A DNA stretch of 64,000 bases from Ostrea edulis (taxonomy: Eukaryota), in the NCBI RefSeq assembly GCF_947568905.1, contig NC_079172.1, positions 31,682,001 through 31,746,000 on the forward strand, written 5' to 3'. Both the position numbers and the translations under genes were made by a program. Below the pieces are notes generated by a model, which was given only the letters and a program-made list of their open reading frames with translations, had not been told where the DNA came from and made no database searches. Below are positions 8,948-52,437 of this stretch, piece by piece (positions within the stretch are counted from its first letter, which is position 1; each line of letters begins with the position of its first letter).

Positions 8948-8956
8948 TAGTTGTTA
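8948..8956. other. Left 9-bp target-site duplication TAGTTGTTA of the Foldback element
   Basis: Identical 9-mer at 32463-32471, immediately outside the opposite TIR. Confidence 0.9.
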
Positions 8957-11900
8957 ACTAAAGTCAAGCTAGCGAACAATAAGCTAGCGACCAATAAGGA
9001 TTTTTCCTAATATTTATCGCTTAGAAAACGTACGTATAACGAACCCGACAAAAAAGTACTCTCAATATACGGCGCCTAGCGCCTAAACTAGGACTTGTGC
9101 CACTTAGTTGACCACAGGGCATTTTAGGGCATTGACCCCCTAATGGAATCTGACCCCAAAAGGGTAAGTATAGGCACCGATTTGGGGCACGGGGGCGCCA
9201 AATATACCCTATCTAACTATATGCGATAGGGATCTAAATACGGCGCCTAGCGCCTAAACTAGGACTTGTGCCACTCAGGTGACCACAGGGCATTTTAGGG
9301 TATTGACCCCTCTAATAGATTCTGACCCCAAAAGGGTAAGTATAGGCACCGATTTGGGACACGGGGCGCCAAATATACCCTAGTTTTACTATTCGACTAT
9401 ATGCGATAGGGGTCTAGGTACGGCGCCTAGCGCCTAAACTAGGACTTGTGCCACTCAGGTGACCACAGGACATTTTAGGGCATTGACCCCTCTAATAGAT
9501 TCTGACCCCAAAAGGGTAAGTATAGGCACCGATTTGGGGCACGGGGGCGCCAAATATACCCTATCTAACTATATGCGATAGGGGTCTAAATACGGCGCCT
9601 AGCGCCTAAACTAGGACTTGTGCCACTCAGGTGACCACAGGGCATTTTAGGGTATTGACCTCTCTAATAGATTCTGACCCCAAAAGGGTAAGTATAGGCA
9701 CCGATTTGGGGCACGGGGCGCCAAATATACCCTAGTTTTACTATTCGACTATATGCGATAGGGGTCTAGGTACGGCGCCTAGCGCCTAAACTAGGACTTG
9801 TGCCATTCAGGTGACCACAGGACATTTTAGGGCATTGACCCCTCTAATAGATTCTGACCCCAAAAGGGTAAGTATAGGCACCGATTTGGGGCACGGGGGC
9901 GCCAAATATACCCTATCTAACTATATGCGATAGGGGTCTAAATACGGCGCCTAGCGCCTAAACTAGGACTTGTGCCACTCAGGTGACCACAGGGCATTTG
10001 AGGGTATTGACCCCTCTAATAGATTCTGACCCCAAAAGGGTAAGTATAGGCACCGATTTGGGGCACGGGGGCGCCAAATATACCCTAGTTTTACTATTTG
10101 ACTATATGCGATAGGGGTCTAGGTACGGCGCCTAGCGCCTAAACTAGGACTTGTGCCACTCAGGTGACCACAGGACATTTTAGGGTATTGACCCCTCTAA
10201 TAGATTCTGACCCCAAAAGGGTAAGTATAGGCACCGATTTGGGGCACGGGGGCGCCAAATATACCCTATCTAACTATATGCGATAGGGGTCTAAATACGG
10301 CGCCTAGCGCCTAAACTAGGACTTGTGCCACTCAGGTGACCACAGGGCATTTTAGGGTATTGATTCCTCTAATAAATTCTGACCCCAAAAGGGTAAGTAT
10401 AGGCACCGATTTGGGGCACGGGGGCGCCAAATATACCCTAGTTTTACTATTTGACTATATGCGATAGGGGTCTAGGTACGGCGCCTAGCGCCTAAACTAG
10501 GACTTGTGCCACTCAGGTGACCACAGGACATTTTAGGGCATTGACCCCTCTAATAGATTCTGACCCCAAAAGGGTAAGTATAGGCACCGATTTGGGGCAC
10601 GGGGGCGCCAAATATACCCTATCTAACTATATGCGATAGGGGTCTAAATACGGCGCCTAGCGCCTAAACTAGGACTTGTGCCACTCAGGTGACCACAGGG
10701 CATTTTAGGGTATTGACCTCTCTAATAGATTCTGACCCCAAAAGGGTAAGTATAGGCACCGATTTGGGGCACGGGGCGCCAAATATACCCTAGTTTTACT
10801 ATTCGACTATATGCGATAGGGGTCTAGGTACGGCGCCTAGCGCCTAAACTAGGACTTGTGCCATTCAGGTGACCACAGGACATTTTAGGGCATTGACCCC
10901 TCTAATAGATTCTGACCCCAAAAGGGTAAGTATAGGCACCGATTTGGGGCACGGGGGCGCCAAATATACCCTATCTAACTATATGCGATAGGGGTCTAAA
11001 TACGGCGCCTAGCGCCTAAACTAGGACTTGTGCCACTCAGGTGACCACAGGGCATTTGAGGGTATTGACCCCTCTAATAGATTCTGACCCCAAAAGGGTA
11101 AGTATAGGCACCGATTTGGGGCACGGGGGCGCCAAATATACCCTAGTTTTACTATTTGACTATATGCGATAGGGGTCTAGGTACGGCGCCTAGCGCCTAA
11201 ACTAGGACTTGTGCCACTCAGGTGACCACAGGACATTTTAGGGTATTGACCCCTCTAATAGATTCTGACCCCAAAAGGGTAAGTATAGGCACCGATTTGG
11301 GGCACGGGGGCGCCAAATATACCCTATCTAACTATATGCGATAGGGGTCTAAATACGGCGCCTAGCGCCTAAACTAGGACTTGTGCCACTCAGGTGACCA
11401 CAGGGCATTTTAGGGTATTGATTCCTCTAATAAATTCTGACCCCAAAAGGGTAAGTATAGGCACCGATTTGGGGCACGGGGGCGCCAAATATACCCTAGT
11501 TTTACTATTTGACTATATGCGATAGGGGTCTAGGTACGGCGCCTAGCGCCTAAACTAGGACTTGTGCCACTCAGGTGACCACAGGGTATTTTAGGGTATT
11601 GACCCCTCTAATAGATTCTGACCCCAAAAGGGTAAGTATAGGCACCGATTTGGGACACGGGGCGCCAAATATACCCTAGTTTTACTATTCGACTATATGC
11701 GATAGGGGTCTAGGTACGGCGCCTAGCGCCTAAACTAGGACTTGTGCCACTCAGGTGACCACAGGACATTTTAGGGCATTGACCCCTCTAATAGATTCTG
11801 ACCCCAAAAGGGTAAGTATAGGCACCGATTTGGGGCACGGGGGCGCCAAATATACCCTATCTAACTATATGCGATAGGGGTCTAAATACGGCGCCTAGCG

Positions 11901-12050
11901 CCTAAACTAGGACTTGTGCCACTCAGGTGACCGCAGGGCATTTTAGGGTATTGACCTCTCTAATAGATTCTGACCCCAAAAGGGTAAGTATAGGCACCGA
12001 TTTGGAGCACGGGGGCGCCAAATATACCGTATTTAACTATATGGAATAGG
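8957..12050 (+). repeat. Left TIR: 114-bp unique end plus 17 tandem monomers, mostly alternating ~172 bp and ~180-181 bp
   Basis: GGCGCCTAGCGCC starts at 9071, 9242, 9422, 9594, 9774, 9946, 10127, 10299, 10480, 10652, 10832, 11004, 11185, 11357, 11538, 11718, 11890. Confidence 0.95.
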
Positions 12051-13741
12051 GAAAATTTGCAAAATTTTGGCCTATGCTCGGCACTTACGGCCTTTGAGCA
12101 GGGAATAGCGATATTTGCTCATTGAAGTGGTGAATATAACGGAAACCCTTGGTCAATGGATGGCCTGATGAGTAATCAAATTCAACCTGTTTTCTTAATC
12201 ATTCTTCGAAAATCAATGCCGGTATAGCAATAACTATAGCAGTCCCTAGTTGTCTTTTCGCTCTGGCAGTTCAGGTGGTATTTAAGTTATTTAAAGGCAT
12301 AGGGTCTAAGATATTGGTGAAATTTTGTTTGTTCCAAAAAGGTGGCGAAATTTAAGATCATAACTAGAAAATCACACAAAGTTCTTCAGAATGTTCACAA
12401 ACACATTGGATACGATAGTAATTACAAAACAATTCCCTGTTCTCATTTGCCTAAACTGGTACCCTGTTGACTTTGCATCTCTTATGTTTGTGTGTAGCCA
12501 CCAATCAGCGGAGTACCAGTTTAATATAATGTCCTCCAGACAAAAATTTTATAAAGGGGTAAAACGTCAAAATGACTTCAATTTCAAAGCGATGCAGCTT
12601 TAGATAACTCATAATTAGTACTGCAAATTTGTTTTTTGGAGTTCTCTTTGCAAAATATTGTGATGTCATTTTTGAGATAAAAGATAGACCCTATGCCTTT
12701 AAAATAATTTTCTTGGGACAAAGAATTAATGATATGAAAAAAGACTTGATTGTGCTAAAAAATAATGAGACCAAAGGACAAAAAAAAAAATCTAAGAGAA
12801 TTAGAAAAAATGAGATTTCTGTAGAGAATGTGCAACTGCTAACATTCACCATGGATTCTATATTTTTGTGAAGGTAGCGGATGTAGAAAATGTGAAGCAA
12901 ATCCTCCTATTTGTATTGCTCATAAAGAGATTAATGAAAAATCACCAGGAGAATGGATTGCTCCAATAAGGTGATTTGTGGTACAGATGTCAGTTTCATA
13001 TCTTCATCTACATAATTTGCCTAATCATTTCTACCTTTGATCAAGATCAATTAAACACAAGTATCAATATAGAATATTTACACGGGTTATACGATTGCTG
13101 GTTTTGAAGACAGTGGTCCTGTCCTTTCTCTTGCTTATACCTCAAATCTCTGTTTTTGCAAATTAATCAAAAGATCAGTGCAGCTGCTATATTTACTGTG
13201 GATTTAAAATTCTATATACTTGATCCTCAATCGTTTGACAGTAAAGCTAAACGCTAATCTAAATAATGATTTTCAAACATAGATTTAGATCTGCATCCTA
13301 GCTGGGTTTTTTCTTCTTTTTTACCTTCAAGGCATCCATTTTTCCCTAGCAGCATAGGTTGATTGTTTGGGATTTAAATGGAAATATTTAGCCATTTTAC
13401 GGTGGTTAACTAAATAAAATATAATCGGTTTTGAAGAGTGTTGGAGCAGCATAGGAATCAAATGGAATATATGTATTCAGTATATAAAGCGTTTGTATTT
13501 TTGTCACAATTTGCATCTTTTGTCACCTCGTTTCAGTACTTTCAGTACTTTGATTAAAAATAAGGGCGTCCTGAATCAACCAGAATTACATGTATTTTGA
13601 GTAAGCGCTTAAAGGCCTATGCTTCCGAAATTAATCTTATTAATAAAAGTCAAGAAGGTTTTAGAAAAAATTATTCTACTCTAAATCATATTTAACTCTG
13701 CAATTTTTATAGCCTGCTCTACTCAGTAGGAAGAAACAATA

Positions 13742-13935
13742 TTTTGTGCTTTTGTAGATTTCAAGCAAGCCTTCGATACAATTCAGAGAAATGGTCTTTG
13801 GTATTACCTATTAGAAAATAGAATTAAGGGAAAATGTTATACTTTTAAACAAAATATGTATAGAAGATAAATATGATCAGTATGTCATTTGATTTTTTTT
13901 TTCTGTTTTAATGTCCGGTTCGCTAAAGTGAAAGT
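13742..13935 (+). pseudogene. Degraded non-LTR reverse transcriptase fragment
   Basis: Translates FCAFVDFKQAFDTIQRNGLWYYLLENRIKGKCY (RT 'DFxKAFD' motif), then stops; it ends where the adjacent LINE tail begins. Confidence 0.7.
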
Positions 13936-13952
13936 TTATCCCCCTTTTTATT

Positions 13953-16150
13953 CTAATAATAATAATAATGATAACCTTCATTTATCCAGGATAACACAAA
14001 TTAGCAAATAGCTAGTTTCATTGTGGTCCTGCATTAAAACATGTACACAAACATAAAATTAACATCTAAAATTAGTATCTAAACATGAATACGATATAAA
14101 AGGAAAAGGGGGAAAATATAGCATAAGACACACCTAATTAGTGATAAAATTATTACCTAAATATGAATACATGACATAAAAGGAAAGAAGAAAAAATAGC
14201 ATAAGACACACGCACACACAGTGCCATATCACAACTACATTTGGCACACCTGAACAAAAAGAGGCAATCACGATGTTTAAGTGCTACTTCTATGAAAATA
14301 TTCTATCAAATACACAGCTTTAAAAATGCCAACCGAACCAGAGCTTCGAACATTTTGAGACAGTTTGTTCCAAAGGAATGCAGAAGAGTAGCTGTATGAA
14401 CGTTTAAAATTTTCAGTTTTAGCTCTTGGTAAATATAATAAATTAGACATATAATCATTCGACCTGGTTTGGCGGCAACTCACATCTCTTGTATATTTAA
14501 ACACGTTTAGGTAATATGGCATCTGATTATTTAAAACTTTGAACAGAAAGACAACTTTTCTAAACATAAAATAATCCTTAATTGGCATCCAGTTCAAACA
14601 AGAAAATAAAAAGTCAGTAGAGGTCCTGATATCTCGAATATTTAAAAATATTCTTGCTGCCCTCTTTTGTAGCTTGAATTTTTTTTTCTAAATACAGTTG
14701 ATTTTGTACGTTACACCAGACAGTACAGCAGTAAGTTAAATGTGGAAAAACAATATTATTACAAACCGTGATAAGTGCATTTGGTGGCATAAAATAACTC
14801 ACTCTCTTAAGTACAGCAAGATTTCTTGCAATTTTCTTTGAAATAAACTCCACGTGTGCATCCCATGATAAAGTATTATCTATATAAACATCTAATAGTT
14901 TAGACTGCTTCACAAATTCAATTTGTACACCATTAAAATCTATATTTAACATTCGACATTTCCGTAACATTTGAGACGTGCCAATAAGCATACATTGTGT
15001 TTTTTGAAGATTTATACTGAGTTTATTTTTAAGCATCCATTCTGAACCCAACTTAAGGTCCTCTTGCAATTTTGATTCAATTACATCAACAGATTTATCA
15101 CTCACATCCTGTGAAGTGTCGTCTGCATACATTGTAACTGAAGAGTGTTTAAGACATTTTGGATAATCGTTAATGTACAAAATGAAAAATAATGGTCCTA
15201 AAATTGACCCCTGAGGAACTCCTAAGGATATACTTTTTTCTCTAGATAACACACCTCTCCAACTGACACATTGCTTACGATTTGTAAGATATGATTGAAA
15301 CCTTTTAAAAGCGTTGTAACAAATTCCAAAAGACATAAGTTTATGCAAAAGTACTTCATGGTTGACTGTATCAAAGGCCTTACGCAAGTCAATAAACAGA
15401 ACCCCTGTAAGCCTTCCATCGTCCATGTTTTTGAACCATTTATCAGTAAGACCATTCAACGCTGTCTCACATGAATGACTTGGCCTAAATCCAGATTGAC
15501 TATCTGTAATTTATTTGTTTGTAGATAAATATTCATAAAAGGAATTGAAGACATGCCGTTCAATAATCTTACTGACAACTGGTAAAATAGAAACTGGTCT
15601 GTAATTATTTACCAAATGCTCATCACCTGCTTCATACAATGGGACTACCCTAGCTCTTTTCCAAGCATCCACAAATGTGCATGAGGATATGGATTTGTTA
15701 AAAATAAAATGTAAAATATCACCAATATGATTAAATGACAACTTTAAGAGTTTTACAGACAAACCATTACTACCTGTGGCTTTCGAAGATGCCATTTTGA
15801 TAATTTCATTTGCAATAAATTCAATTGTAATTTCTGGAATTTTAAATGAACCTGGTGGTTCTAGATGTTCCACATACGGTAAAGAAGAATCAAAATGCTT
15901 TCCTATTTCATGTCCTACATTACAAAAGAAATCATTAAAACGGTTAGCCATTAATTCAAAAGAGGTAATGGTACCGTTGTCAGTTTGTAAATGTGTACAT
16001 ACTGTCGAATTCTGCCTCGATGGTAAACAATTCTCTATTTATATTAATGAACTAAAAGAATTTTTGATAGAAAAAATATATTGGTGGTTTACTATGATAT
16101 CTACAACTTCAAATCATTTTTGTTTTCATTGCCACACTTTTATCTGCATT
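13953..16150 (-). mobile_element. 5'-truncated, disrupted L2/CR1-clade LINE (RT and C-terminal region)
   Basis: ORFs 15511-15951, 14614-15459 and 14277-14597 carry NYRPVSILPVVSKIIE, FIDLRKAFDTV, GVPQGSILGPLFF and YADDT motifs, split by frameshifts or stops. A (TAA)n tail lies at ~13953-13970. Confidence 0.9.
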
Positions 16151-17644
16151 TCAAATTCAAGAATGGAGGGGACAAACGTGTGTTACATGTAATCAGTTCA
16201 AATTCCTAAGTGTTCTTTATTTAGCCTCGACGAAACATCGTTCTTTCCCGTAACATTGTACGGGAAAATTGTCTGTTCTGGACAGTTTCCGTTAAGTAAC
16301 GTGGTAAAAAAGAAAATGTTATCTGTAATAGACTGTTTCCGAGAAAACATAGCATTTGTATCCAAACCTTTCCGCGCCCTTCATTGTATGAAAATAGTCA
16401 CAAGCAAGTATGTGTTGAATTATTTATTTTATTTGAAAATTGAAACCTTTATGATAATTAAATGTATATACACTATCCAGCCTCCTTAAAATAGTCATTG
16501 AATATTTTATATTTCTATCATGTATTGTGATGCAACCAACCATTAAAATTCCCAATCATTACTTGCACGAAATAAAGGTCCTAAAAATCTATCAATGTAG
16601 TTCTAAGTAATTTGAATTGTTATGATAGAAATTTTAGAATTGAATAAACATTTCTTGTAACATCTACTTGCTTAGTAAATGATAAATGTGGCGCTAGTAT
16701 TCAAATCTTTCTCAAAAGATAAGTTTTTATGATAAGTTAGTTTGACTAATGTTATGCATTTTCACTAGTTCCTGCTTTAAACACATTTTTAGACCCAGAT
16801 CCTTGGAAATGGAATCCCAATAAATAGACAAGCATATCTAATACCACATTGATGTCGTTAACACAATGACAGGAACTCCTTCCTTAGTTGACCCAGCAAG
16901 ATAAATACTAACAATAAGCTGTAACAACTTTCTTCAAGCAATCGTTACATTTCTCGAAACTATGGTCATGCCACGACACTCGCCTTATAATACTGGTGCA
17001 TTCCCAAAAGTATTTTAACTATTTTAGGGAGGATTACATTTTTATTACAGGTCTAAAAAATACATGTAAAATGATACACAAGTATATACACTGTATACTT
17101 CTTTCTTCCAATTCATGATTCAACGAAAATAAATCATGATGAACACAATTCTTTTTCCCAAAGTGGAACTTGTTAAAACTTCATTTGAACTCCGCATACC
17201 GAGAAATATAGCATGCTTACTGTCTACAATATACTAATAAACCCCACAAGCAAATCTGCCGGTGTCGGGATAAGCAACCTTATTGCAAGATGGCTGAAAG
17301 ATCAAATTTTAACATTAATACTTTGAATGTTCTCCATCCTAAACTGAGTTTGTCTATACAGATATAGAAAAAAACGAATGTAAGAATTCTAAGAATGAGC
17401 ATTCAAAATATCCATGCTTAAATGTCTACCTATGAGCCGGTTTTTGTTCCAAAAATGTACATGCGATTTTGACCCCCCTTCACATTTTATTACAATGATT
17501 TTGAAATTAACGATTGTCATATACAATTGAATACTCCTCTTTGACTAACTGCACTCTGGTTATTCTCCGACTGTCCTTGACGAGCGGACATTCTCTTTGC
17601 AAGTGAATAAAGTTCCCGAACGCTTAACACCTACCGATAGATGT

Positions 17645-17838
17645 TGGACTGGTGTTTCGCTTCGCTACCAAGAGGTCTCGGGTTCGATTATCGATGCCGA
17701 CACCACGTCCAACCTAAGACTTTTAACATAAGTAGTGCGTGTTTTTCCGCCAAGCGCCCGGAATGAAAACCGAAGGTTATGGGTATTCGGACATGACATT
17801 TAACCAGGATATCTCTGTCACGGTAGGTGTTGGCATGG
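17645..17838 (+). mobile_element. Degenerate tRNA-derived SINE, 5' part
   Basis: B-box-like GGTTCGATTA followed by CCTAAGAC...AGTAGTG..TCCGCCAAGCGC...GGACATGAC, homologous to the SINEs at 24248 and 59546. Confidence 0.65.
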
Positions 17839-17883
17839 TAATTCAGAACGAAAGAAATGTAAATCTGCGAAGCATAAATAGTT

Positions 17884-20800
17884 TTAATACTCAATTGTTC
17901 CACTCAGAAGTTCTCTAACTATCTGCATACGCATGTAATGCGCAAGATGCTTCAGAATTGGAAACCTTCTCTCAATCAAAATAGCTTTGGCCATCTCACA
18001 TACATACACCCCACAACTGACACCGTCTTCTTGCAATGGGAATGTTGAATCACTGCAATAGTCGACATATTTCCATTCCCTCATTTCAAACTTCTTTCCA
18101 TACCTTACCATGTATTCATAAGCAAGGTACCTACAAATCTGAAATAGAATTACACTTGTAGTGTCGCCTTTGGAATCGCAATAGTATATAGTTTTCTTAG
18201 GGACGTTTATTGCCAGCAAAATCCAGTGAATATTACGTATATTAACCGGAATGAATATTTGCGATTTTTCGAACCAGTTCACAGTTTTGCTTTGGACTTC
18301 AAACATGTCACATTTTAACACCTTGGAACTACCGTCAACAATAACTTTGTGACTGAACCAACCAGCATCAACCATATGCACGTCTGAATTTGTATTATTT
18401 GATAGCATATCCATATAACAATTTATATCGTCACTAGATAGCCAGTACGTGTCATTACACATCGATTTTAAAGCAGACACCTCTACTGGATACCGTTTTT
18501 GAAAGCGTCCACAAAATTGATTAACTTGAGCAGCTGAAACGTTTTGCTCTGGAATGACCATCGTTTGAATTTCAGACAAATTGTCACATTTTTTGTCGAT
18601 TATCTTCACAGATATCCCCTTTTGCATTCTATCATAACAAGAGAGTAATATCTGCATATTTTTCATTCTTTCCTCCTTTACTTCTTCAGGTACATCACTC
18701 TCACCATAAATCAACAGTTTATTGTTGTCGTTGAATACTAATCTAACTGCACCATTCTCAGATACAAGCATCGTAGATATCTTATACTGCAGACTGACAA
18801 GGGGCATAGTTGTTGTTACTAAGCCCTCCAGATCAAAGTCATAACAAACATCACCTTTAATGTTCATTTCATCTGATGTAATCATCATCGTAGTGGGTAG
18901 CCAAGATACGTATGATGTGCATTTTGCATCTTTTGCAGAACAGGACGGACAACTCAACTGAATTTGAAACGATTTAGCTATGTCATGTAGATCAAATGAA
19001 GCAGGCTTTAGCACTGCGTAACGTGTTTTACACAAAATGTTCTCTCTTTGGCAAGACGTGCAGCTGACAACCACCTCTGCTGCATACTTAAAATGACATC
19101 CCAATTGTGTCTGCGACGAATTATTTTCAAAGAGAGTCCCCAAAAGCCGTTCAACAAATATGGAAACTTCATTCGACGTTTTGAAATTGCTTCTTTTTGC
19201 TACAAGACTTTGCAACTTCTTCAGTGAGGATTGGTTCACGCTTCTGTCTAATTTTATACTTTGCAGTAAATCTGCAGTATATCTTTTAGTGTTCTTGTTG
19301 GTTGGTAAGGACGAAATAGCTGCTTTGAATGCTTTTGTTTTACCTACACACTGAAGAAGAGAAGTCGTATACTCTGGTAGACTAGGTTCTTTTCTGTCAT
19401 ACAAAAGAAAGTAGCAGGAGCTTCCTACCTCTGACTCTGTACCAACAGATAGCTTTGTGTCACTAATTTTCTTCAATGAATTGTCCTCAAAGACAAAGGC
19501 TGTATAGTGTCCCGATTGGGTAGAGCGACCATGATGGCATACTGCACTTTTTAAAGTATACTGTACGTTCTGAAGATTGTCCGTGTAGTCGGTCAAATCT
19601 ATTAATCTATCAGGTTTGATCTCCGATACATTCTTTCGATATTGACACCTTCCAATATCATACTCAAACCTTTTCACCGTTAAAACTAAAGTACTAGGGG
19701 CTTCTCTCAATTTTTGATTCAAATCTAATAATCCTCCACATCGGCAATTTTCAATAATATCGTGTTCAAAATAATCTTTTAATAATTCTTTAACAGACAT
19801 TTTGATACCTGGTTTGTTTGGTATTGTTAGCGCCAAGTTTTGAACATATGAATCAATTTTTTCAGTTTTGTTCCCACAGTCTAAACACGTGAAGAACTTT
19901 ATGATGTTAAGTCTTTCACCAATGTCCATAGCCATTGGAGATATCGCTTTCATATAAAATTCATTTGCATCTTGTTGTTCCCTGTAATTTATTCCTAGAT
20001 CACCTACTGCTAAACCAAGATTGTTCAAAGCTGTTTGTACAAGTGGTGTAGGAACTTTTTCACCAGCTGACGCTCTGCTTAAAATGTGTCTGAACACGTC
20101 GTAAAAAGCCTCCTTCATATCATCTATTTTCTCCTTGCTGATAGCAATGGGTGCATTCTCAGAATAATCAAGAAATGATTTTGCCATGTTTGTAACACTG
20201 ATGGATTGTATCGTGGCATTGAACCAACAAGTTGCACCGAGATTGTCAATAGGACAAAATGTATTGCAAGAAGTGCTCTGTAACGTCGCACCCTTGGATT
20301 CGAGGGAAGACAGGGAGTGTATCGGGGCCTTTTGAAACCTACCTACATTATCGAGGAAATCTTCCGACTTCTGTCGCTTATTCCAGTTCTCTGTTATTGT
20401 TGTAACATTTCTTTTTCGTTTTAATTTTCCAACAGATTTCAAGGTGTCCTTTGCTGCACATCTCTGAATCTGAACCGTTTGCCTCATTAATTCCTCTGCA
20501 AAGTCGTCAATGCGACGGTTTTTCTTTCCATCCAATCCAATATACTTCAAAATACGAAATCTGTTTTCTATGGTTCCCTGTGTAGTACACTCTGAAAGCG
20601 TTGGATGGGTTTTGAGAAGAATACTTCCCCATAGTGGTAAGATCGGTATATATCGATTTAAAATTTGTTGAAGTAGAACTTCAGAATGGTAGGGATTTTT
20701 AATCCCAGAAGCATTTTCAACTACTGTGCACGATGCTGTATTGAAAATATCCAATCCCCATGTTTTAAATGGAGAAAAAGTAGCTAAATTTAGAAAATCT

Positions 20801-23688: not shown

Positions 23689-24247
23689 ATAAATTCATAT
23701 CACAAATTTGACCTTGAAAACTTAAAGTAATAGGTTTAATTAAGAATATAATGACTGGCCGCAAATCAAAACTATATGAATAAAACGATTTCTTGCAAAG
23801 TGTTGTGTCTCGCTAAATTGGAGTCTAACTATGCCTAAGTATTGATAAATCAAAGTTGTCGTTATGTCGTACCAATAAATTTCTACTTCGTCCGACGAGT
23901 TGTAAAGACAATGGGGATATATTTCATCAGACTGGATCAAAAAATTTATATCCTGATTAAAACCTTGTTGTTGTTGATTTTGTTGTTGCTATTTGTAAAT
24001 ATCAAGAATTAGATTCTAGTACGAATTAACAAACAACAATGGTGGATCTAGCGGTGAATACAATTCCCTTGCGGAGAGTGAGGGATTTCATATTTCTATG
24101 TTGTCAAAATTACTTCGTAAAACCAAGTGGCATAAGTTCCCAACCATGAACTTCATATAAAATATACGGCTTCAAAAATTTAAGCATTTCAATATGTTTT
24201 AATAAATGACCTTGAACATAAAACGCTCTCAAGGTTATCATTTTCTT

Positions 24248-24575
24248 CGCGGTAGCTCAGTGGCAGAACGGTCACTTCGTAACCGAAGGTGTTGAGTTTG
24301 AGCCCAACTCGTGCCATGGCGGCCAAACCTAAGACATTGAAATGGGTAGTGATTGCTCCTTCGCTAAACTAGTGAGAATCACTTGTCTATCGGATATGAC
24401 CTTATAAACGGAGGTCCCGTGTCGCGGCAGACGTTGGCACGATAAAGAACCCTTACTGCTACGGCCTTGAACACTAAGCATGGATCTAAATTTGTGGTAC
24501 TTCACCAACAGCTGGTGATGTTTCAATATAAGTGGAAGATTATCGACGGGACGTAACACAACCAACCAATCAATC
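24248..24575 (+). mobile_element. Full-length-like tRNA-derived bivalve SINE
   Basis: A-box-like GTAGCTCAGTGG, degenerate B box, core CCCGTGTCGCGGCAG..GTTGGCACGATAAAGAACCC, and a 3' CGGGACGTAACACAACCAACCAATCAATC tail. Confidence 0.8.
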
Positions 24576-26039
24576 ATATTACACCTCATTTGTCTAGCCT
24601 AATAGCATAGTATTAGTAACTAGTTAGTCAGTGTGCCGACTATCTATAATCATATATCTTTATACATATAACCATATAACCATGATAACGATATTATTGT
24701 TAAGTCCGCGGATCGAATAACATGATGCCAAAAGTAACCTGTAGGTGTCCAATAAGTTGACAATTACAGTCCATTATTTTAATAAAGGACAAAAAAATGT
24801 CCAAAATACTGTTAAACCTTAACAATAGCTAGCGCATATGTCCAGCGCTTGAAAATGGTAAGTAATTGTCACCTTATTGGACGGTGCCAGGTAAATTAAT
24901 CAACGTGTTAGACAGGTAGACTAAAACATGAGAAGACGCCGCAATTGCTAAACAGAAACAATTCCTTTATTGGAAAGTCACTGATATACCTAAACGATAA
25001 TTTTCTCTTAGTATATTCATCTGCTCCAACTTAAAGATTCAAAAATTTCATTTAATTCTCCTAAAGTAAAGTAAATTTTATTTAAAGTCGGGACTATATA
25101 CATTCAACAAATCAAACACAAGCTCTATAGAGCCTTTTAACCGACTATCACATTCAAGTATATCAAAGACACATAGCATGCATGTACACATATACACAGA
25201 CATATCACAGATAACAAAAGAATACAAAACTTTCATGCAAGAATATACAAAAATATACAGATACGAAAGCATAAGACTAAGAGGAAGAAATAAAATACTA
25301 CAAGCAAGAGTATATGTATGTAAAAATCATCATTAAATTTCAAGCTAATTAGCTATGTTTGCTGTTTCAAGTTTCCTTTTGGGGTCAGAGCAATAATTGA
25401 TATATTGCGCGCATTAATTCATTTGATGAGAGCAATAATTGATTTAATGCGCGCATTAATTCAATTAAAGACCAAAAAAAAACAAAAACAAAAAAACACC
25501 GTACGGTTGCTCCACGGATCACTGAATGTGGGCGGAGCTTATCCATGGTCAATGTTATTTACCTGGAATTTACCTGGCTAAGAGAACGGTTGTTGTGTAT
25601 ATTTTTATGATATACACAGGAAATTTCTCAGGTTATTACAAATTATGCTTAGTGTCTTGATTTGTGCAAAAAAAAAAAAAAAATAATAAAAAAAAAAAAA
25701 ATAAAAAATTCTACCTACATGCATTCCGCATTTCTATTTCCCGTAAACCTTCAAACTTGGTCATATTTATGTATTGCAAATGACAGGTTTAGCCCATTTC
25801 TAAACCTTTGCTTTTTAAAACTGCTAATTAAATTGTTATATATCGTATATAAATATTTTCCTAAATATGATATTACCCGGCGTTTCCAGGCACTTCCTGG
25901 TGTCCTGAGAGTTCGCGGTGTCGTGGGTGTAGTAGGTAAAATATCCATGTTTCGAGAGAATGAATAAATCCAAGTAGATCTGTGTACATGTACAACCAAA
26001 TGAAGAATGATCAAGATACCCCTCAATATGGGCCGTCTG

Positions 26040-26099
26040 TAGCTGTAGTGTTTGCGTAATGGTGGTATCCCAAACAGAAGCTGACACGAAGTCTACCCC

Positions 26100-26139
<40 letters not shown>

Positions 26140-26479
26140 GGGTTTCTGTGGACGTAGTGTTTGTGTAAAGATGGCATCCCAAACAGAAACTGACACGAAG
26201 TCTACACCCCCTCCTCTCTCTCTCTTTAGGGTTTCTGTGGACGTAGTGTTTGTGTAACGATGGTATCCCAAACAGAAGCTGACACATAGCTAGTCTCCCC
26301 CCTTTCTCTCTCTCCCTTACTCTCAATCATTGACTAAATGAGTAATTATTGTCATACGTATGCAACACTATTGCCATGCCATATTATTTCATCTATATTA
26401 TTGCTACAGTTTTACACATTTCTCTCTCTCTCTCTTTCTTTATAAATATAAAACTGTGATAAATTATAAATAGCTCAAT

Positions 26480-26537
<58 letters not shown>

Positions 26538-26648
26538 TCTTTATAAATAGAAAACCGGGATAAATTATAAATAGAAATATCTCAATAACTCTCTTTCTCT
26601 CTCTATAAATATAAAGCTGTGATAAATTATGAATAGAAATATCTCAGT

Positions 26649-26727
<79 letters not shown>

Positions 26728-26770
26728 AAGCCGTGATAAATTATAAATAAAAATATCTCAATAACTTATT
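26040..26770. repeat. Compound repeat: three ~85-115-bp units (GTAGTGTTTG..ATCCCAAACAGAAGCTGACAC) and four units (AAAACTGTGATAAATTATAAATAG..CTCAATAA) interleaved with (CT)n tracts
   Basis: Direct reading. Confidence 0.85.
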
Positions 26771-27757
26771 TATGCTTTTTTACTATTGTTTGATTTCTGA
26801 TTGTGTAATTTATAATAATCCATGTGGTATCTCAAACAGAAGCATTTTTTTAACTACTGTAACAGTTTTACGCATGGGCAATATAACCATTATACATGTT
26901 GATGTGCTGCGCCAATAAAGAATTGTTCATGTTTTTATAAATATAAAGCCACAATAAATCATTAATAGAAAATATTCCAATAACTTATGTTTGTTTGGTT
27001 GTTGTTTTTTTTATATTATTGTTTGATTTCTGATTGTTTAATCTATAATACATGTATAAAGATGGAGAGAGAAAATACGATGATAAATTGCATTGTATAG
27101 GGGACGTTAGAAATTAAATATTCTAGGTGCGAGTCAATGCTATCAAAACTCAGGTATACTGGGGCTTTCGAGATCTGAAGACTGCCGGTCATCATTAGCC
27201 ATGATTGTTATCAAAACATCTTTCTGAGGTAGCTGTAGACCATGGTCTTTGCAAACGTCAATCAACCTAAGCTCTATTGTTAAAAGTTTGATTGACCAGC
27301 GGCTTATCATTGATCGCAACACAGGTAAAATTTGGGGGCGTTAACTTAAAGTTGGGTCTTTAAAGAGAGCAATAATTGAATTGATGATATCTTCAAATAA
27401 TTGAAGATATTTTCAATTATTTGAGTTTATGTTAATTTGGCGCTCCATAGAACAGCAGCATTGAAAAAATACCAAATATTGTGCGATGAAATTCCTAAAT
27501 ACATATCTAAATACATTATGTCCATCATCTTTCAAAACTTACTTTTAATTAGGTGTACTTGATATAAATCTGTTATTTTTATATCAATATCTACAAATAG
27601 TGGAAGTGCACATGTCACAAAATTCTGTGGAATGATGAATAGTACGTTCTGCTAAATTTTCAAATGGAGTATCAAGAATTTCAACAATTCCGTTCTGAAA
27701 TAGAACATCCTCCAATGATCTAGAAATAACAATTTATTACGTTGGGGAGGGGGTCAT

Positions 27758-28163
27758 CAGTGGCGGATTTAAGGTAAATCGTGGTATCTTGTTTAGAAAA
27801 ATGTAAACAATAAAACACGCAATAATTCATTCCTCTCTTAGAGCAATAAATGACAAAATCTTTTGATTTTTGAATTACTTTTATTGGGGGAACTTACATT
27901 TTTTCTAAAAACCCTTAAAATTGGCATCATATTGTTGATTTCCCTCCATCAAAAATGACAGAGAATAGTAAAAATTACTACATAGAAGACATATTTGAAG
28001 CCCAATAAAATCTGTAAAATCCAGGAGCTTCCGGGGCTTCGCCCCCTGGGTCTCCACCAGGGCTTAGCCCTGGACCCACTGGAGGTTTCAAGGCGCCCTC
28101 CCCCCCCCCCCCCCTTGCATCATAAAATTGCGCCCCTAACCGCAATTCCTGGATCCACCCCTG
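27758..28163. mobile_element. Small non-autonomous TIR element (CAGTGGCGGAT...ATCCACCCCTG) flanked by GTCAT on both sides
   Basis: Imperfect TIRs, a 5-bp direct repeat at 27753-27757 and 28164-28168, and internal homology to 57670-58029. Confidence 0.75.
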
Positions 28164-28596
28164 GTCATGCTAATAAAGTGATTGTAAAACGTGGTACTTT
28201 GCATAAAACTCCTTTGGTGTTTATACATAGAATTAATACGGCATTACTGAAAAAATCCACATTTGATAAATACTATTTTTTCTCTCATTGTATGATTGAA
28301 AAATATTTATGATTTTTACAAAATTCATAACAAAGACACGTGTCTGCGCAAACCACATGGGTCCTCAAACAGGGCCCATTTCATTTCAAACATCAAACAC
28401 TGGTCTATCGTGAATTCATTGACACACGCCAAATATTCGTACGAATTAATGTACATCAGATTTGGCACGGTGTGAAAGGGATAGTTTCGCACTATAGACC
28501 CGGTCAACTTTCTCAAAAAATAAAAATATCTCATATTTAAAGTAATATTACCCGTGTAAAAATTTATCAAATGATTTTGGGAAACGTGTCAAGTAT

Positions 28597-31500
28597 ACCT
28601 AAGTGGCACAAGTCCTAGTTTAGGCGCTAGGCGCCGTACCTAGACCCCTATCGCATATAGTCAAATAGTAAAACTAGGGTATATTTGGCGCCCCGTGCCC
28701 CAAATCGGTGCCTATACTTACCCTTTTGGGGTCAGAATCTATTAGAGGGATCAATACCCTAAAATGCCCTGTGGTCACCTGAGTGGCACAAGTCCTAGTT
28801 TAGGCGCTAGGCGCCGTATTTAGACCCCTATCGCATATAGTTAGATAGGGTATATTTAGCGCCCCCGTGCCCCAAATCGGTGCCTATACTTACCCTTTTG
28901 GGGTCAGAATCTATTAGAGGGATCAATACCCTAAAATGCCCTGTGGTCACCTGAGTGGCACAAGTCCTAGTTTAGGCGCTAGGCGCCGTATTTACACCCC
29001 TATCGCATATAGTTAGATAGGGTATATTTGACGCCCCCGTGCCCCAAATCGGTGCCTATACTTACCCTTTTGGGGTCAGAATCTATTAGAGGGATCAATA
29101 CCCTAAAATGCCCTGTGGTCACCTGAGTGGCACAAGTCCTAGTTTAGGCGCTAGGCGCCGTATTTAGACCCCTATCGCATATAGTTAGATAGGGTATATT
29201 TGGCGCCCCCGTGCCCCAAATCGGTGCCTATACTTACCCTTTTGGGGTCAGAATCTATTAGAGGGATCAATACCCTAAAATGCCCTGTGGTCACCTGAGT
29301 GGCACAAGTCCTAGTTTAGGCGCTAGGCGCCGTATTTACACCCCTATCGCATATAGTTAGATAGGGTATATTTGACGCCCCCGTGCCCCAAATCGGTGCC
29401 TATACTTACCCTTTTGGGGTCAGAATCTATTAGAGGGATCAATACCCTAAAATGCCCTGTGGTCACCTGAGTGGCACAAGTCCTAGTTTAGGCGCTAGGC
29501 GCCGTATTTAGACCCCTATCGCATATAGTTAGATAGGGTATATTTGGCGCCCCCGTGCCCCAAATCGGTGCCTATACTTACCCTTTTGGGGTCAGAATCT
29601 ATTAGAGGGGTCAATACCCTAAAATGTCCTGTGGTCACCTGAGTGGCACAAGTCCTAGTTTAGGCGCTAGGCGCCGTACCTAGACCCCTATCGCATATAG
29701 TCAAATAGTAAAACTAGGGTATATTTGGCGCCCCGTGCCCCAAATTGGTGCCTATACTTACCCTTTTGGGGTCAGAATCTATTAGAGGGATCAATACCCT
29801 AAAATGCCCTGTGGTCACCTGAGTGGCACAAGTCCTAGTTTAGGCGCTAGGCGCCGTATTTACACCCCTATCGCATATAGTCAAATAGTAAAACTAGGGT
29901 ATATTTGGCGCCCCCATGCCCCAAATCAGTGCCTATACTTACCCTTTTGGGGTCAGAATCTATTAGGAGTGTCAATGCCCTAAAATGCCCTGTGGTCACC
30001 TGAGTGGCACAAGTCCTAGTTTAGGCGCTAGGCGCCGTACCTAGACCCCTATCGCATATAGTCAAATAGTAAAACTAGGGTATATTTGGCGCCCCGTGCC
30101 CCAAATCGGTGCCTATACTTACCCTTTTGGGGTCAGAATCTATTAGAGGGATCAATACCCTAAAATGCCCTGTGGTCACCTGAGTGGCACAAGTCCTAGT
30201 TTAGGCGCTAGGCGCCGTATTTAGACCCCTATCGCATATAGTTAGATAGGGTATATTTGGCGCCCCCGTGCCCCAAATCGGTGCCTATACTTACCCTTTT
30301 GGGGTCAGAATCTATTAGAGGGGTCAATACCCTAAAATGTCCTGTGGTCACCTGAGTGGCACAAGTCCTAGTTTAGGCGCTAGGCGCCGTACCTAGACCC
30401 CTATCGCATATAGTCAAATAGTAAAACTAGGGTATATTTGGCGCCCCCATGCCCCAAATCAGTGCCTATACTTACCCTTTTGGGGTCAGAATCTATTAGG
30501 AGTGTCAATGCCCTAAAATGCCCTGTGGTCACCTGAGTGGCACAAGTCCTAGTTTAGGCGCTAGGCGCCGTACCTAGACCCCTATCGCATATAGTCAAAT
30601 AGTAAAACTAGGGTATATTTGGCGCCCCGTGCCCCAAATCGGTGCCTATACTTACCCTTTTGGGGTCAGAATCTATTAGAGGGATCAATACCCTAAAATG
30701 CCCTGTGGTCACCTGAGTGGCACAAGTCCTAGTTTAGGCGCTAGGCGCCGTATTTAGACCCCTATCGCATATAGTTAGATAGGGTATATTTGACGCCCCC
30801 GTGCCCCAAATCGGTGCCTATACTTACCCTTTTGGGGTCAGAATCTATTAGAGGGATCAATACCCTAAAATGCCCTGTGGTCACCTGAGTGGCACAAGTC
30901 CTAGTTTAGGCGCTAGGCGCCGTATTTAGACCCCTATCGCATATAGTTAGATAGGGTATATTTGGCGCCCCCGTGCCCCAAATCGGTGCCTATACTTACC
31001 CTTTTGGGGTCAGAATCTATTAGAGGGGTCAATACCCTAAAATGTCCTGTGGTCACCTGAGTGGCACAAGTCCTAGTTTAGGCGCTAGGCGCCGTACCTA
31101 GACCCCTATCGCATATAGTCAAATAGTAAAACTAGGGTATATTTGGCGCCCCGTGCCCCAAATCGGTGCCTATACTTACCCTTTTGGGGTCAGAATCTAT
31201 TAGAGGGATCAATACCCTAAAATGCCCTGTGGTCACCTGAGTGGCACAAGTCCTAGTTTAGGCGCTAGGCGCCGTATTTACACCCCTATCGCATATAGTC
31301 AAATAGTAAAACTAGGGTATATTTGGCGCCCCCATGCCCCAAATCAGTGCCTATACTTACCCTTTTGGGGTCAGAATCTATTAGGAGTGTCAATGCCCTA
31401 AAATGCCCTGTGGTCACCTGAGTGGCACAAGTCCTAGTTTAGGCGCTAGGCGCCGTACCTAGACCCCTATCGCATATAGTCAAATAGTAAAACTAGGGTA

Positions 31501-32462
31501 TATTTGGCGCCCCGTGCCCCAAATCGGTGCCTATACTTACCCTTTTGGGGTCAGAATCTATTAGAGGGATCAATACCCTAAAATGCCCTGTGGTCACCTG
31601 AGTGGCACAAGTCCTAGTTTAGGCGCTAGGCGCCGTATTTAGACCCCTATCGCATATAGTTAGATAGGGTATATTTGGCGCCCCCGTGCCCCAAATCGGT
31701 GCCTATACTTACCCTTTTGGGGTCAGAATCTATTAGAGGGGTCAATACCCTAAAATGTCCTGTGGTCACCTGAGTGGCACAAGTCCTAGTTTAGGCGCTA
31801 GGCGCCGTACCTAGACCCCTATCGCATATAGTCAAATAGTAAAACTAGGGTATATTTGGCGCCCCCGTGCCCCAAATCGGTGCCTATACTTACCCTTTTG
31901 GGGTCAGAATCTATTAGAGGGATCAATACCCTAAAATGCCCTGTGGTCACCTGAGTGGCACAAGTCCTAGTTTAGGCGCTAGGCGCCGTATTTACACCCC
32001 TATCGCATATAGTCAAATAGTAAAACTAGGGTATATTTGGCGCCCCCGTGCCCCAAATCGGTGCCTATACTTACCCTTTTGGGGCCAGAATCTATTAGGA
32101 GTGTCAATGCCCTAAAATGCCCTGTGGTCACCTGAGTGGCACAAGTCCTAGTTTAGGCGCTAGGCGCCGTACCTAGACCCCTATCGCATATAGTCAAATA
32201 GTAAAACTAGGGTATATTTGGCGCCCCCGTGCCCCAAATCGGTGCCTATACTTACCCTTTTGGGGTCAGATTCCATTAGGGGGTCAATGCCCTAAAATGC
32301 CCTGTGGTCATCTAAGTGGCACAAGTCCTAGTTTAGGCGCTAGGCGCCGTATATTGACAGTACTTTTTTGTCGGGTTCGTTATACGTACGTTTTCTAAGC
32401 GATAAATATTAGGAAAAATCCTTATTGGTCGCTAGCTTATTGTTCGCTAGCTTGACTTAGGC
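28597..32462 (-). repeat. Right TIR: about 21 tandem 172/180-bp monomers (inverted relative to the left array) plus the 114-bp unique end
   Basis: Reverse complement of the left array; the terminal monomer shares diagnostic variants (CACTTAG, TAATGGAATC) with the left terminal monomer. Confidence 0.95.
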
Positions 32463-32471
32463 TAGTTGTTA
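32463..32471. other. Right 9-bp target-site duplication TAGTTGTTA
   Basis: Identical to 8948-8956. Confidence 0.9.
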
Positions 32472-33210
32472 TTGTAATCCGGAAGTGACACGCCTTACAA
32501 ATTACGTTCCATGCGCGTTAAAAGTCAGAGTGGATCCGTAACTCGAAAGTCCCGTTTTAGACAGCCATTATGACGATATGTTATTCTTCCTTAATTCAAA
32601 CTCTTAAGGTCTTTCTTTCAATTCCAATTAATTGCATTCTTAATTTCGACCAATCATCTAACATTTAGATATGTTGGGTAACACACCCAATGGGGGGGGG
32701 GGGGGGGGGGGGGGGTGTAGTTAATGCTGTCATTCCTATAGAGGATATTACCTGGTAAATCCCAATTTTTAAACAGAATAGTTGCCCCTTGCTTCGGTTT
32801 AAATTGGCTCATTACACCAAAACTTTATTCAAAAGAATGTAGTTTTCTGAACAAAATCTTGGGTATAATCACTTTTCTATAATTCTGATCGGGTTTGGTT
32901 CAAATTCAAAAAATCAAAGTACATGTATTCCTGAAGTTTGACCATTTCATTTCAATTTCTTTTTAAAATATAATTATCTGATACGTCTTTTTTCTAATTT
33001 GTTTCTTGAAGATTTTAGTCACAGAAATTAAATATATATATATATTTATTCACAAATAACATTTCTAATTTTCATAAATATTATTATGTAAAAATTAGAA
33101 CGTCTATCTGAGTTGTAGACATTTATTTGACCAGGTATTCATGTCATGCATTAAATCACAATTACTGTGCAGACATGGTCCATAAGCAGTGGCGGATCCA
33201 TCGCTACGTC

Positions 33211-33445
33211 AGTAGTAAGGGGGACAGTACACAGTCAGTATACAGTCAAGATGACGTCATGGGTTTTTCCCCACATAGGTCATTGAGGTCAGGGGTGAGT
33301 ACACAGTCAAGGGGGAGTATACAGTCAAGGGGGAGTATACAGTCAAAGGGGAGTATACAGTCAAGGGGGAGTATACAGTCAAAGGGGAGTCTACAGTCAG
33401 AGGGTGAGTCCACAGTCCAAGGGTGAGTCCACAGTCAAGGGTAGG
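33211..33445 (+). repeat. Maverick left TIR containing 18-bp iterons (GAGTATACAGTCAAGGGG) and a TGACGTCA site
   Basis: Inverted match to 53585-53819. Confidence 0.95.
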
Positions 33446-52432: not shown

Positions 52433-52437
52433 TGACA

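Follow-up and report, generated by a model that had tools for sequence, protein, structure and literature searches.

Foldback elements with tandem-repeat ends are known from insects. The Drosophila melanogaster element FB-NOF (FB4/NOF) has long inverted arms of unequal length, built of 10/20/31-bp units, a 9-bp target-site duplication (TSD) and an internal ORF encoding the NOF protein (UniProt P16320). [quoted passage not shown] In the Rehavkus-like foldback elements of Tribolium, the inverted termini carry satDNA arrays of up to 50 monomers, can exceed 11 kb and are proposed to spread satellites (10.1101/2024.12.02.626372). Satellite-bearing foldback elements are already described in Drosophila and Tribolium. 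What is new at the locus analyzed here is the bivalve host, the size, and the fusion of PHD, BAG, transposase, USP and Ulp1 domains in one predicted protein.

We analyzed a 64,000-nucleotide stretch of the Ostrea edulis genome (GCF_947568905.1, NC_079172.1, positions 31,682,001 to 31,746,000), referred to below as the window. The original prediction held that a 23.5-kb block in it is a single autonomous, recently mobile Foldback transposon whose TIRs are satellite arrays and whose ORF encodes a NOF-like, MULE-related protein. What it described in the sequence was confirmed, with one correction to the length of the termini, which are about 110 bp rather than 114 bp. Its reading of the block was supported, as the three points examined (a single insertion, a NOF/MULE-like protein and recurrence of the architecture) all held, although autonomy and recent mobility remain inferences. 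The features are collected in Table 1.

Table 1. Features of the oyster element and its flank (positions in the 64,000-nt window).
Feature	Position	Strand	Description
Host sequence	8238..8947	.	Target of the insertion, itself a high-copy dispersed repeat, continuing to the right from 32472
Left TSD	8948..8956	.	TAGTTGTTA
Left unique terminus	8957..9066	+	About 110 bp, with two 15-bp direct repeats, each with a GCTAGCG core
Left arm	9067..12051	+	17 monomers of the 172/180-bp satellite in strict short-long alternation (353-bp higher-order unit), 49% G+C; TRF period 172/353, 17 copies, 91-96% matches
Internal region	12052..28596	.	Unique, 16.5 kb, 35% G+C; holds the ORF, a nested retroelement fragment, microsatellites and pieces of other dispersed repeats
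Nested non-LTR retrotransposon fragment	14067..15951	-	Decayed; RVT_1, E 2.9e-22; 78-bp tail repeat; not a conserved part of the element
ORF	17884..23688	-	Intact, 1934 codons; probable start M41 at 23568, giving 1894 aa; PHD, BAG, putative WRKY-like zinc finger, DDE transposase core, USP, Ulp1
PHD finger	22924..23067	-	Residues 208-255; E 6.4e-5, 23.3 bits, just under the Pfam cut-off of 24
BAG domain	22603..22818	-	Residues 291-362; E 1.3e-10, above the cut-off
Predicted transposase core	20359..22128	-	Residues 521-1110; C580-x4-C585-x23-H609 (WRKY/GCM1-type pattern); RNase-H-fold DDE domain with D737, D812, C859-x2-H862 and E1041
USP/UCH deubiquitinase domain	19399..20250	-	Residues 1147-1430; E 3.7e-26; Cys box (GATCWFN) and His box (SGHYTAF) present
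Ulp1/SENP C48 protease domain	17959..18447	-	Residues 1748-1910; E 1.1e-17; His (IHWILL) and Cys (GVSCGVY) motifs present
Right arm	28597..32352	-	22 monomers of the same satellite, inverted, with irregular order of short and long units; TRF period 172, 21.2 copies, 94% matches
Right unique terminus	32353..32462	-	Inverted copy of 8957-9066
Right TSD	32463..32471	.	TAGTTGTTA

Including their termini, the two arms measure 3,095 and 3,866 bp and are inverted relative to each other, with stretches of up to 728 nt at 96-99% complementarity. Monomers come in two lengths, 171-172 and 180-181 bp, and are as alike between arms (96.8-98.0%) as within arms (97.1-98.7%), while the outermost monomer is a distinct variant shared by both arms. 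The left terminus and the reverse complement of the right one are identical except for 3 of the first 4 bases (ACTA vs GCCT) and one internal mismatch, and a 39-mer from the terminus occurs only at these two places in the window. The summed word depth of the terminus in two oyster sequencing runs was about 200-470 times that of a locus-exact contig, suggesting tens to hundreds of copies, although this is a rough measure and depth is not a copy number. No second copy with the same termini and a different TSD was retrieved, no other flank was recovered, and a scan of JGI metagenome contigs for the terminus gave 0 hits.

The 9-mer TAGTTGTTA directly abuts both termini. It has 3 hits in the window against 1.3 expected, so its presence alone means little, but an exact 9/9 match at two fixed boundary positions has a chance of about 4e-6. 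In all four oyster runs, three of one organism and one of a second species, contigs end their match at 8956 and continue with TTGTAATCCGGAAGTGACATGCCCTACAAA, which is identical at 28 of 30 positions to the window after 32471, indicating that the uninterrupted target exists with a single TAGTTGTTA. As the flank is itself a high-copy repeat, with a summed depth hundreds to thousands of times that of a locus-exact contig and many contigs with variant letters, these are mostly paralogous empty sites, and no allelic empty site was shown.

The ORF has no internal stop and contains all four motifs named in the original prediction, FWDATG at residue 735, IISDES at 809, LCKSH at 858 and IENRF at 1040. 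Translation probably starts at M41, because the homologue P0001 starts with MKRQCGP where the window reads MKRQSGQ. An exact look-up of the protein from three alternative starts found no entry in the collection searched, and a look-up of a 94%-identical fragment, P0033, found no record. Six sequencing runs of unknown kind hold 0.29-0.77 of the words of the ORF.

Alignment of the DDE-like region to MULE/NOF profiles had been named beforehand as a criterion, and by sequence it did not succeed for MULE: neither the window protein nor any of 28 relatives gave a hit to Pfam MULE (PF10551) or Transposase_mut (PF00872), even at E 0.1-10, no member of the core family hit any other Pfam model, and a profile search of PDB sequences returned only noise. 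The superfamily assignment therefore rests on structure prediction, language-model features and motifs. The AlphaFold (AF2) model of the core (pLDDT 83.7) has P16320, the NOF-FB protein, as its best structural match in Swiss-Prot (E 5e-25, TM 0.67, 584 residues aligned, 16% identity), with the next hit at 8.6e-13. In the ESM Atlas the best match is a cluster named after NOF, in which 45% of members carry Ulp1 and 34% PHD. Weaker matches are MULE-derived proteins and IS256-family transposases, and among solved structures the best is the IS256-family transposase ISCth4 (Z 13.5), followed by Hermes (10.1) and the P element (9.6). Language-model neighbours are all PF10551 MULE clusters. In the 28 relatives, D737, D812 and H862 (D217, D292 and H342 of the core) are invariant, and C859 and E1041 (C339 and E521) are at least 90% conserved. 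In the model, D737 lies in a strand, D812 directly follows one, E1041 lies in a helix, and a helical insert separates them, as expected for the RNase-H-fold DDE core of the Mutator/MULE superfamily with IS256, in which a CxxH motif follows the second D and an all-helical insertion precedes E. N-terminal to this, where members of the superfamily carry a WRKY/GCM1- or FAR1-type zinc-finger DNA-binding domain, lies a conserved C-x4-C-x23-H pattern on a four-stranded sheet, for which the Pfam WRKY hit reaches only E 0.29.

A profile search for the family reached 1247 clusters at E<=1e-3. A search with a second alignment (A2) gave more family members but no source names linking to NOF, and one with an alignment of distant members (A3) returned only its own first sequence. 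The BAG/USP/Ulp1 architecture is conserved at 35-57% identity, including in Pinctada, and PHD recurs in relatives. P0010, a 2086-aa homologue in another assembly, is colinear with the window protein and also lies between inverted 195-bp arrays, of at least 4.8 and at least 9 kb. In contrast, five of seven homologue loci showed no inverted arrays within about 10 kb, and two more showed an array on one side only; no pair was found at the homologue loci L001, L002, L003, L006, L009 and L010, of which L001 and L010 have a ~187-bp array on one side only. The satellite of the window showed no similarity to the arrays of L001, L003, L005 and L006. We considered whether the reverse transcriptase (RT) fragment downstream of the ORF is a conserved second gene, since the related element L005 has one in a similar place, but the two share only 26% identity (generic RT), so these are independent nested insertions.

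Compared with FB-NOF, the oyster element shares the long tandem-repeat arms of unequal length, the 9-bp TSD and an internal ORF whose core is structurally closest to NOF, but its arms are built of nucleosome-length 172/180-bp monomers behind a 110-bp unique terminus, and its protein is nearly twice as long and adds BAG and USP domains. The PHD finger, the 9-bp TSD and the long TIRs with subterminal tandem repeats of Rehavkus are all present here; BAG, USP and Ulp1 fusions are not mentioned for Rehavkus in the passages of the two papers cited above that a term search retrieved. Tm1 of Meloidogyne and Phantom-type MULEs share composite TIRs, 9-bp TSDs (8-11 bp, typically 9, in the superfamily) and a MULE-type transposase, and carry short asymmetric motifs at the very tips, outside the inverted repeat (PMC3169594), which the 4 unmatched tip bases here resemble. 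However, their transposases are about 500 aa, with a FLYWCH finger and a Pfam-detectable MULE domain, and their TIR subrepeats are about 14 bp, while the oyster core has a putative WRKY-like finger and escapes Pfam MULE. Tetris of Drosophila virilis and Galileo, of the P superfamily, also have long, internally repetitive TIRs that seed or carry satellite DNA (PMC4079207, PMC3688188), but Galileo encodes a P-element/THAP transposase, and the P-element transposase is a clearly weaker structural match to the oyster model than the IS256 family; no full transposase was retrieved for Tetris. Plant KI-MULEs are Mutator-like elements associated with a Ulp1/C48 protease, without a USP, BAG or satellite-array TIRs.

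The satellite itself has a distant relative in Crassostrea gigas. CgiSat28 has a 182-bp monomer, unusually G+C-rich for an oyster satellite, is dispersed on all ten chromosomes, is labelled 'DNA/MuDR' by Repbase similarity and is similar to a CenH3-ChIP-enriched cluster (PMC8268682). Using short probes rather than a full alignment, we found that a 22-mer spanning the ends of its consensus matches all 39 monomers here with one mismatch, whereas one published primer matches just once in the window, with 3 mismatches. Ten- and eleven-mers of the window's monomer are absent from the published C. gigas satellite consensus file, so the satellite is not one of its 52 consensus sequences. In the parts of that paper searched, the only link of CgiSat28 to a transposon is the Repbase label, and no foldback element is mentioned.

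Taken together, these results indicate, with a probability of about 0.85, that positions 8957-32462 are one copy of a Foldback-type DNA transposon of the Mutator (MULE) superfamily, closest to FB-NOF and Rehavkus. The analysis shows that the block inserted as one unit into a copy of another dispersed repeat and duplicated 9 bp of target, that its ends are inverted termini followed by satellite arrays, and that it encodes an intact protein whose central part has the predicted fold and conserved D-D-CxxH-E residues of a NOF-like MULE transposase, preceded by a putative WRKY-like zinc finger. How the element works is inferred. The hexamer CTAGCG occurs twice in each terminus and once in every monomer and is almost absent elsewhere, and in this view the transposase would bind repeated sites in the termini and monomers, synapse the two ends and move the element by cut-and-paste with a 9-bp staggered target cut. 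Each transposition would carry a ready-made satellite array to a new site, where unequal exchange could expand it, and the fused PHD, BAG, USP and Ulp1 domains probably act on chromatin, or on ubiquitin/SUMO marks that the host uses to silence or destroy the transposase. Autonomy and recent activity are likewise inferred, without evidence that the ORF is transcribed, and as this copy carries a nested retroelement fragment and other repeat pieces, it need not be young.

Other explanations are unlikely but deserve consideration. The satellite arms could belong to a family of short, spacerless foldback elements, two of which happened to bracket an unrelated transposase-protease gene and moved it as cargo, as Drosophila FB pairs mobilise intervening DNA, in which case the ORF would not be the arms' own transposase. 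The absence of inverted arrays at most homologue loci and the patchwork of other repeats in the internal region are consistent with such a composite. However, the association of a colinear homologue with inverted arrays recurs in another assembly with ~195-bp units of unrelated sequence, ~185-195-bp arrays recur beside other homologues, a 9-bp TSD is what a MULE/NOF transposase makes, and the ORF is the only transposase in the block.

Even less likely is a domesticated host gene, a transposase-derived deubiquitinase/deSUMOylase lying by chance inside an inverted segmental duplication of a satellite. The conservation of the domain architecture across bivalves and beyond, the annotation of the Pinctada copy as an ordinary gene and the several homologue loci without inverted arrays could suggest this, but the uninterrupted target in four runs, the exact abutment of the duplication on the inverted termini, the retention of the predicted catalytic D, D and E and a terminus depth pointing to many copies speak against it. 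Inverted kilobase-scale repeats are also a failure mode of long-read assembly, and the arms are seen here in assembled sequence rather than in single spanning reads. Nevertheless, an artefact is very improbable, since the arms differ in length and monomer order, enclose 16.5 kb of unique sequence and end in termini flanked by a perfect TSD whose empty form is seen in independent runs, and an independent assembly shows the same layout for a homologue.

A broader possibility, which we regard as doubtful on present evidence, is that this is the autonomous master copy of an undescribed, bivalve-wide clade of giant NOF/Rehavkus-like elements, each carrying its own nucleosome-length satellite in its arms and seeding it around the genome. 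The transposase would then be fused to a built-in anti-silencing kit, a PHD reader, a BAG co-chaperone, a USP deubiquitinase and a Ulp1 deSUMOylase that strip the ubiquitin/SUMO marks used by host transposon-silencing pathways. Given the reported CenH3 association of the related CgiSat28, the element would be both a source of dispersed and centromere-associated oyster satellites and a new kind of transposon counter-defence.

For annotation, the two satellite blocks and the 'ubiquitinyl hydrolase' gene are one mobile unit. The locus also provides an intact, experimentally tractable NOF-like predicted transposase, and the Drosophila FB/NOF system is not known to have been reconstituted. It further documents a conserved fusion of a transposase with deubiquitinase and deSUMOylase domains across invertebrates, which makes the idea of transposon-encoded interference with ubiquitin/SUMO-dependent silencing directly testable. 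Oyster satellites are unusually scattered, and so far this has been explained mostly by Helitron/Helentron carriers (PMC7492417, PMC8268682). This locus shows a second vehicle, a foldback element inferred to move by cut-and-paste, which would carry 3-4 kb at a time of a satellite related to a C. gigas repeat reported as CenH3-associated.

Two large arrays of the same unit were reported by Tandem Repeats Finder, with a period of 172 (or 353 as a dimer, in the left array), and repeat analysis showed that they are reverse complements of each other, with arms of up to 728 nt at 96-99%. Cutting the arrays at a conserved motif gave 17 and 22 monomers of two lengths, 171-172 bp and 180-181 bp, which alternate strictly in the left arm and irregularly in the right. 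Monomers of one length class are as alike between arms (98.0% and 96.8%) as within arms (97.1-98.7%), while the two classes are 92% alike, and the arrays are 49% G+C against 35-37% for their surroundings. Outside each array lies a non-repeated terminus, and the two termini are identical in inverted orientation except for three of the first four bases and one internal mismatch. The monomer next to each terminus is a distinct variant shared by both arms, so the outer ends are true inverted copies and the inner parts have since been reshuffled. The 9-mer TAGTTGTTA abuts both termini, and neither the terminus nor the satellite occurs elsewhere in the window. The observation behind the original prediction, two facing arrays of one monomer with near-identical unique termini and a flanking 9-mer, was therefore confirmed, with the small correction that the terminus is about 110 bp and not 114. 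The coordinates of the features are collected in the table below.

Features of the window and of homologue loci (window positions unless a locus or contig is named; residues follow the numbering of the ORF)
Feature	Position	Strand	Residues	Remarks
Homopolymer G tract	4109-4137			about 29 bases
Left flank	8238-8947			high-copy dispersed repeat
Left terminus	8957-9066			~110 bp, non-repeated
Left array	9067-12051			17 copies
Non-LTR reverse-transcriptase fragment	14067-15951	-		RVT_1, E 2.9e-22; decayed, 78-bp tail repeat
ORF	17884-23688	-		1934 codons
PHD finger			208-255	just below the Pfam cut-off
BAG			291-362	clear Pfam match
Core			521-1110	no Pfam family
Faint WRKY hit			563-609	within the core
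USP/UCH			1147-1430	clear Pfam match
Ulp1/C48			1748-1910	clear Pfam match
Interior stretch	24375-24573			matches 59657-59874
Interior stretches	25387-25471, 27359-27449			match 62629-63599
Interior stretch	27767-28024			matches 57715-57973
Right array	28597-32352			21 copies
Right terminus	32353-32462			~110 bp, non-repeated
Right flank	32472-~32560			high-copy dispersed repeat
Homopolymer G tract	32694-32716			about 23 bases, 230 bp from the right end of the element
Arrays of an 18-bp unit	33288-33617, 52224-53742			opposite orientation, about 0.8 kb to the right of the element
Left array of the P0010 locus	contig_13387: 1-4830			195-bp unit
Right array of the P0010 locus	contig_13387: about 26,225 to contig end			195-bp unit, inverted
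Direct repeat at the P0007 locus	L002: 9650-9846, 19899-20095			197 bp, 99.5% identity
Array near a homologue ORF	L001: 23538-25529			185-188-bp units
Array near a homologue ORF	L003: 17836-18573			185-188-bp units
Array near a homologue ORF	L010: 293-1551			185-188-bp units

To determine whether the block is one insertion, Logan contigs of four public oyster runs, three from the window's species and one from a second species, were aligned to positions 8200-9700; oyster-metagenome runs also hold the sequence. In all four runs, contigs stop matching at 8956 and continue with TTGTAATCCGGAAGTGACATGCCCTACAAA (12, 28, 14 and 3 contigs), while in the window the sequence after the second 9-mer, from 32472, reads TTGTAATCCGGAAGTGACACGCCTTACAAA, a 28/30 match. 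Sequences therefore exist in which the left flank, a single TAGTTGTTA and the right flank are contiguous, which is the classical signature of an insertion that duplicated 9 bp. However, the DNA on both sides of the element is itself a high-copy dispersed repeat, with a summed depth hundreds to thousands of times that of a locus-exact contig and many variant contigs mapping to it, so most of these empty sites are paralogous copies of the host repeat and not the allele of this locus, and they prove insertion and the target-site duplication (TSD) but not polymorphism. The summed word depth on the terminus was about 10,000-21,600 in the two deep runs, compared with about 45 for locus-exact flank contigs, and the satellite reached 2-6 x 10^5. 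Although this depth is not a copy number, as an order of magnitude it points to tens to hundreds of termini and thousands of monomers. The second species has the empty target and some partial monomer matches, but nothing at 90% or better on the terminus.

The ORF has clear Pfam matches to three domains and a PHD finger that falls just below the cut-off, and the USP Cys and His boxes and the Ulp1 His and Cys motifs are present, with the cysteines at C1154 (USP) and C1892 (Ulp1). Translation likely starts at M41, as a homologue starts at the equivalent MKRQ. Even though the core matched no Pfam family apart from the faint WRKY hit, it belongs to a large family, as an exhaustive HMMER search found 1247 clusters at E<=1e-3 and 113 at E<=1e-30. 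In an alignment of 28 cores, D217-A-T-G, D292 and H342 are invariant, and C339, E521 and an N-terminal C-x4-C-x23-H pattern are at least 90% conserved; in ORF numbering, these are D737, D812, C859, H862, E1041 and C580/C585/H609. None of the 28 cores hit Pfam, and a search of PDB sequences with the profile found nothing.

AlphaFold2 on that alignment gave a confident model (pLDDT 83.7, pTM 0.72), in which D737 lies in a beta-strand, D812 directly follows another and E1041 lies in a helix, with an all-helical insert between them, while a four-stranded sheet carries the putative zinc ligands. Against Swiss-Prot models, the top hit was P16320, the 120.7 kDa protein in NOF-FB transposable element of D. 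melanogaster (E 5e-25, TM 0.67, 584 residues aligned), far ahead of K. lactis alpha3, FAR1/FRS proteins, ZSWIM3/9 and IS256-family transposases, all of which are MULE-derived or MULE-related. In the ESM Atlas, the best structural cluster was again named after NOF, with 45% of its members carrying Ulp1 and 34% PHD, followed by MULE (PF10551) clusters, and AFDB clusters gave matches at E 1e-45 to 1e-21 named as Transposase, MULE, USP-domain, PHD-type and ubiquitin-like-protease proteins. Among solved structures, the IS256-family transposase ISCth4 ranked first by Foldseek and by VIA-align (Z 13.5), compared with 10.1 for Hermes and 9.6 for the P element, and language-model neighbours were uniformly MULE clusters. 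We conclude that the core is a NOF-like member of the Mutator/IS256 superfamily that is too divergent for the Pfam models, a conclusion that rests on predicted structure and motifs and not on sequence significance.

Proteins with the same order of domains (BAG and/or PHD, core, USP, Ulp1) occur at 35-57% identity and include a Pinctada imbricata protein annotated as a ubiquitinyl hydrolase. The closest full-length homologue (57% identity in the core; Logan SRR6063362, 6100 bp) belongs to a 90%-identity cluster of 441 sequences that lie on Logan contigs of about 6.1 kb, which is either a commonly assembled transcript or a unit bounded by repeats on both sides. More distant members carry PHD+core, core+USP, core+Ulp1, or the core alone, and one comes from a sea cucumber. 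A 530-aa member of this eukaryotic family (P0020) is filed at NCBI as "MAG: hypothetical protein, Sedimenticola sp.", which is probably animal DNA binned into a bacterial metagenome-assembled genome.

We examined seven homologue loci with up to 10 kb on each side. One shows the same layout (ENA ERZ25039479, contig_13387, 35.2 kb), with the 2086-aa colinear homologue P0010 lying between inverted arrays of a 195-bp unit that is unrelated in sequence to the window's satellite; as the contig ends inside both arrays, neither termini nor a TSD could be read there. Two other loci have a 187-188-bp array on one side only, within reach, and one has four copies of a 185-bp unit just downstream. These arrays lie within a few kb of their homologue ORFs (loci L001, L003 and L010), although without a visible inverted partner in the DNA retrieved, and the rest show nothing of this kind. 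At locus L002, the homologue P0007 (ENA ERZ25069870) is bracketed by a direct repeat about 10 kb apart, an unexplained arrangement that differs from the inverted arms described here. The link between this transposase clade and nucleosome-length arrays therefore recurs, but most sampled homologues are not visibly foldback elements and may be decayed, differently built, or domesticated.

The interior of the element also holds the decayed reverse-transcriptase fragment, and although the related element has RT fragments too, the two share only generic 26% identity, so these are independent nested insertions and not a conserved part of the element. Short stretches of the interior match other dispersed repeats of the window at 77-99% identity, including the 21/42-bp repeat field at 62.6-63.6 kb, and are probably small nested or shared mobile elements. 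This copy has therefore been resident long enough to collect insertions, or it carries them as passengers, and its age cannot be read from the arms because they are being homogenised. The arrays of an 18-bp unit to the right of the element may be the ends of a Maverick-like element, in which case the Foldback element would sit next to a second giant mobile element.

Foldback elements with MULE-type transposases are established, namely FB-NOF, FARE, Tm1 and Phantom (PMC3169594). Rehavkus is defined by a 9-bp TSD, a PHD finger and tandem repeats near long TIRs and is reported from arthropods and annelids (PMC6446971), and in Tribolium, Rehavkus-like foldback elements carry satDNA in inverted termini that can exceed 11 kb and are proposed to spread satellites (10.1101/2024.12.02.626372). 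In C. gigas, the 182-bp satellite CgiSat28 is labelled DNA/MuDR by Repbase similarity, is dispersed on all chromosomes and is similar to a CenH3-enriched cluster (PMC8268682). A 22-mer from CgiSat28 matches every monomer here with one mismatch, but the window's monomer is not among the published C. gigas consensus sequences. Full-text searches for foldback together with Crassostrea or bivalve returned only papers that cite Drosophila Tetris, and a search for transposase-USP-Ulp1 fusions returned nothing relevant. Elements of this type are thus already known, whereas we found no description of the bivalve host, the 23.5-kb size, the 172/180-bp monomers or the four-domain fusion, although Repbase may still hold a related MuDR entry.

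In conclusion, this is a real, well-delimited Foldback/Rehavkus-type Mutator-superfamily transposon with a NOF-like transposase, the latter recognized from predicted structure and motifs, and the reading of the original prediction, that the two satellites and the gene form one mobile Foldback element, is supported. The inverted ends, the insertion and its 9-bp duplication are demonstrated by the sequence data, whereas transposase binding and the way the element moves are inferred, as would be its autonomy, current activity and any allelic polymorphism. Cut-and-paste with a 9-bp stagger follows from the superfamily, and roles of the PHD, BAG, USP and Ulp1 domains in chromatin targeting, transpososome remodelling or removal of ubiquitin/SUMO marks are speculation. 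The hexamer CTAGCG occurs twice in each terminus, inside two 15-bp direct repeats, and exactly once in each of the 39 monomers, but only 3 times in the 16.5-kb interior and 4 times in the remaining 40 kb. Multiple transposase-binding sites in long TIRs have been mapped for Galileo (PMC3688188), and the Tribolium preprint cites Liu and Wessler 2017 for the finding that more tandem repeats in foldback termini strengthen transposase binding and raise excision frequency (10.1101/2024.12.02.626372). We propose that the hexamer is part of the binding site of the putative WRKY-type finger at residues ~540-620, so that each arm of the element would be a long row of transposase-binding sites.
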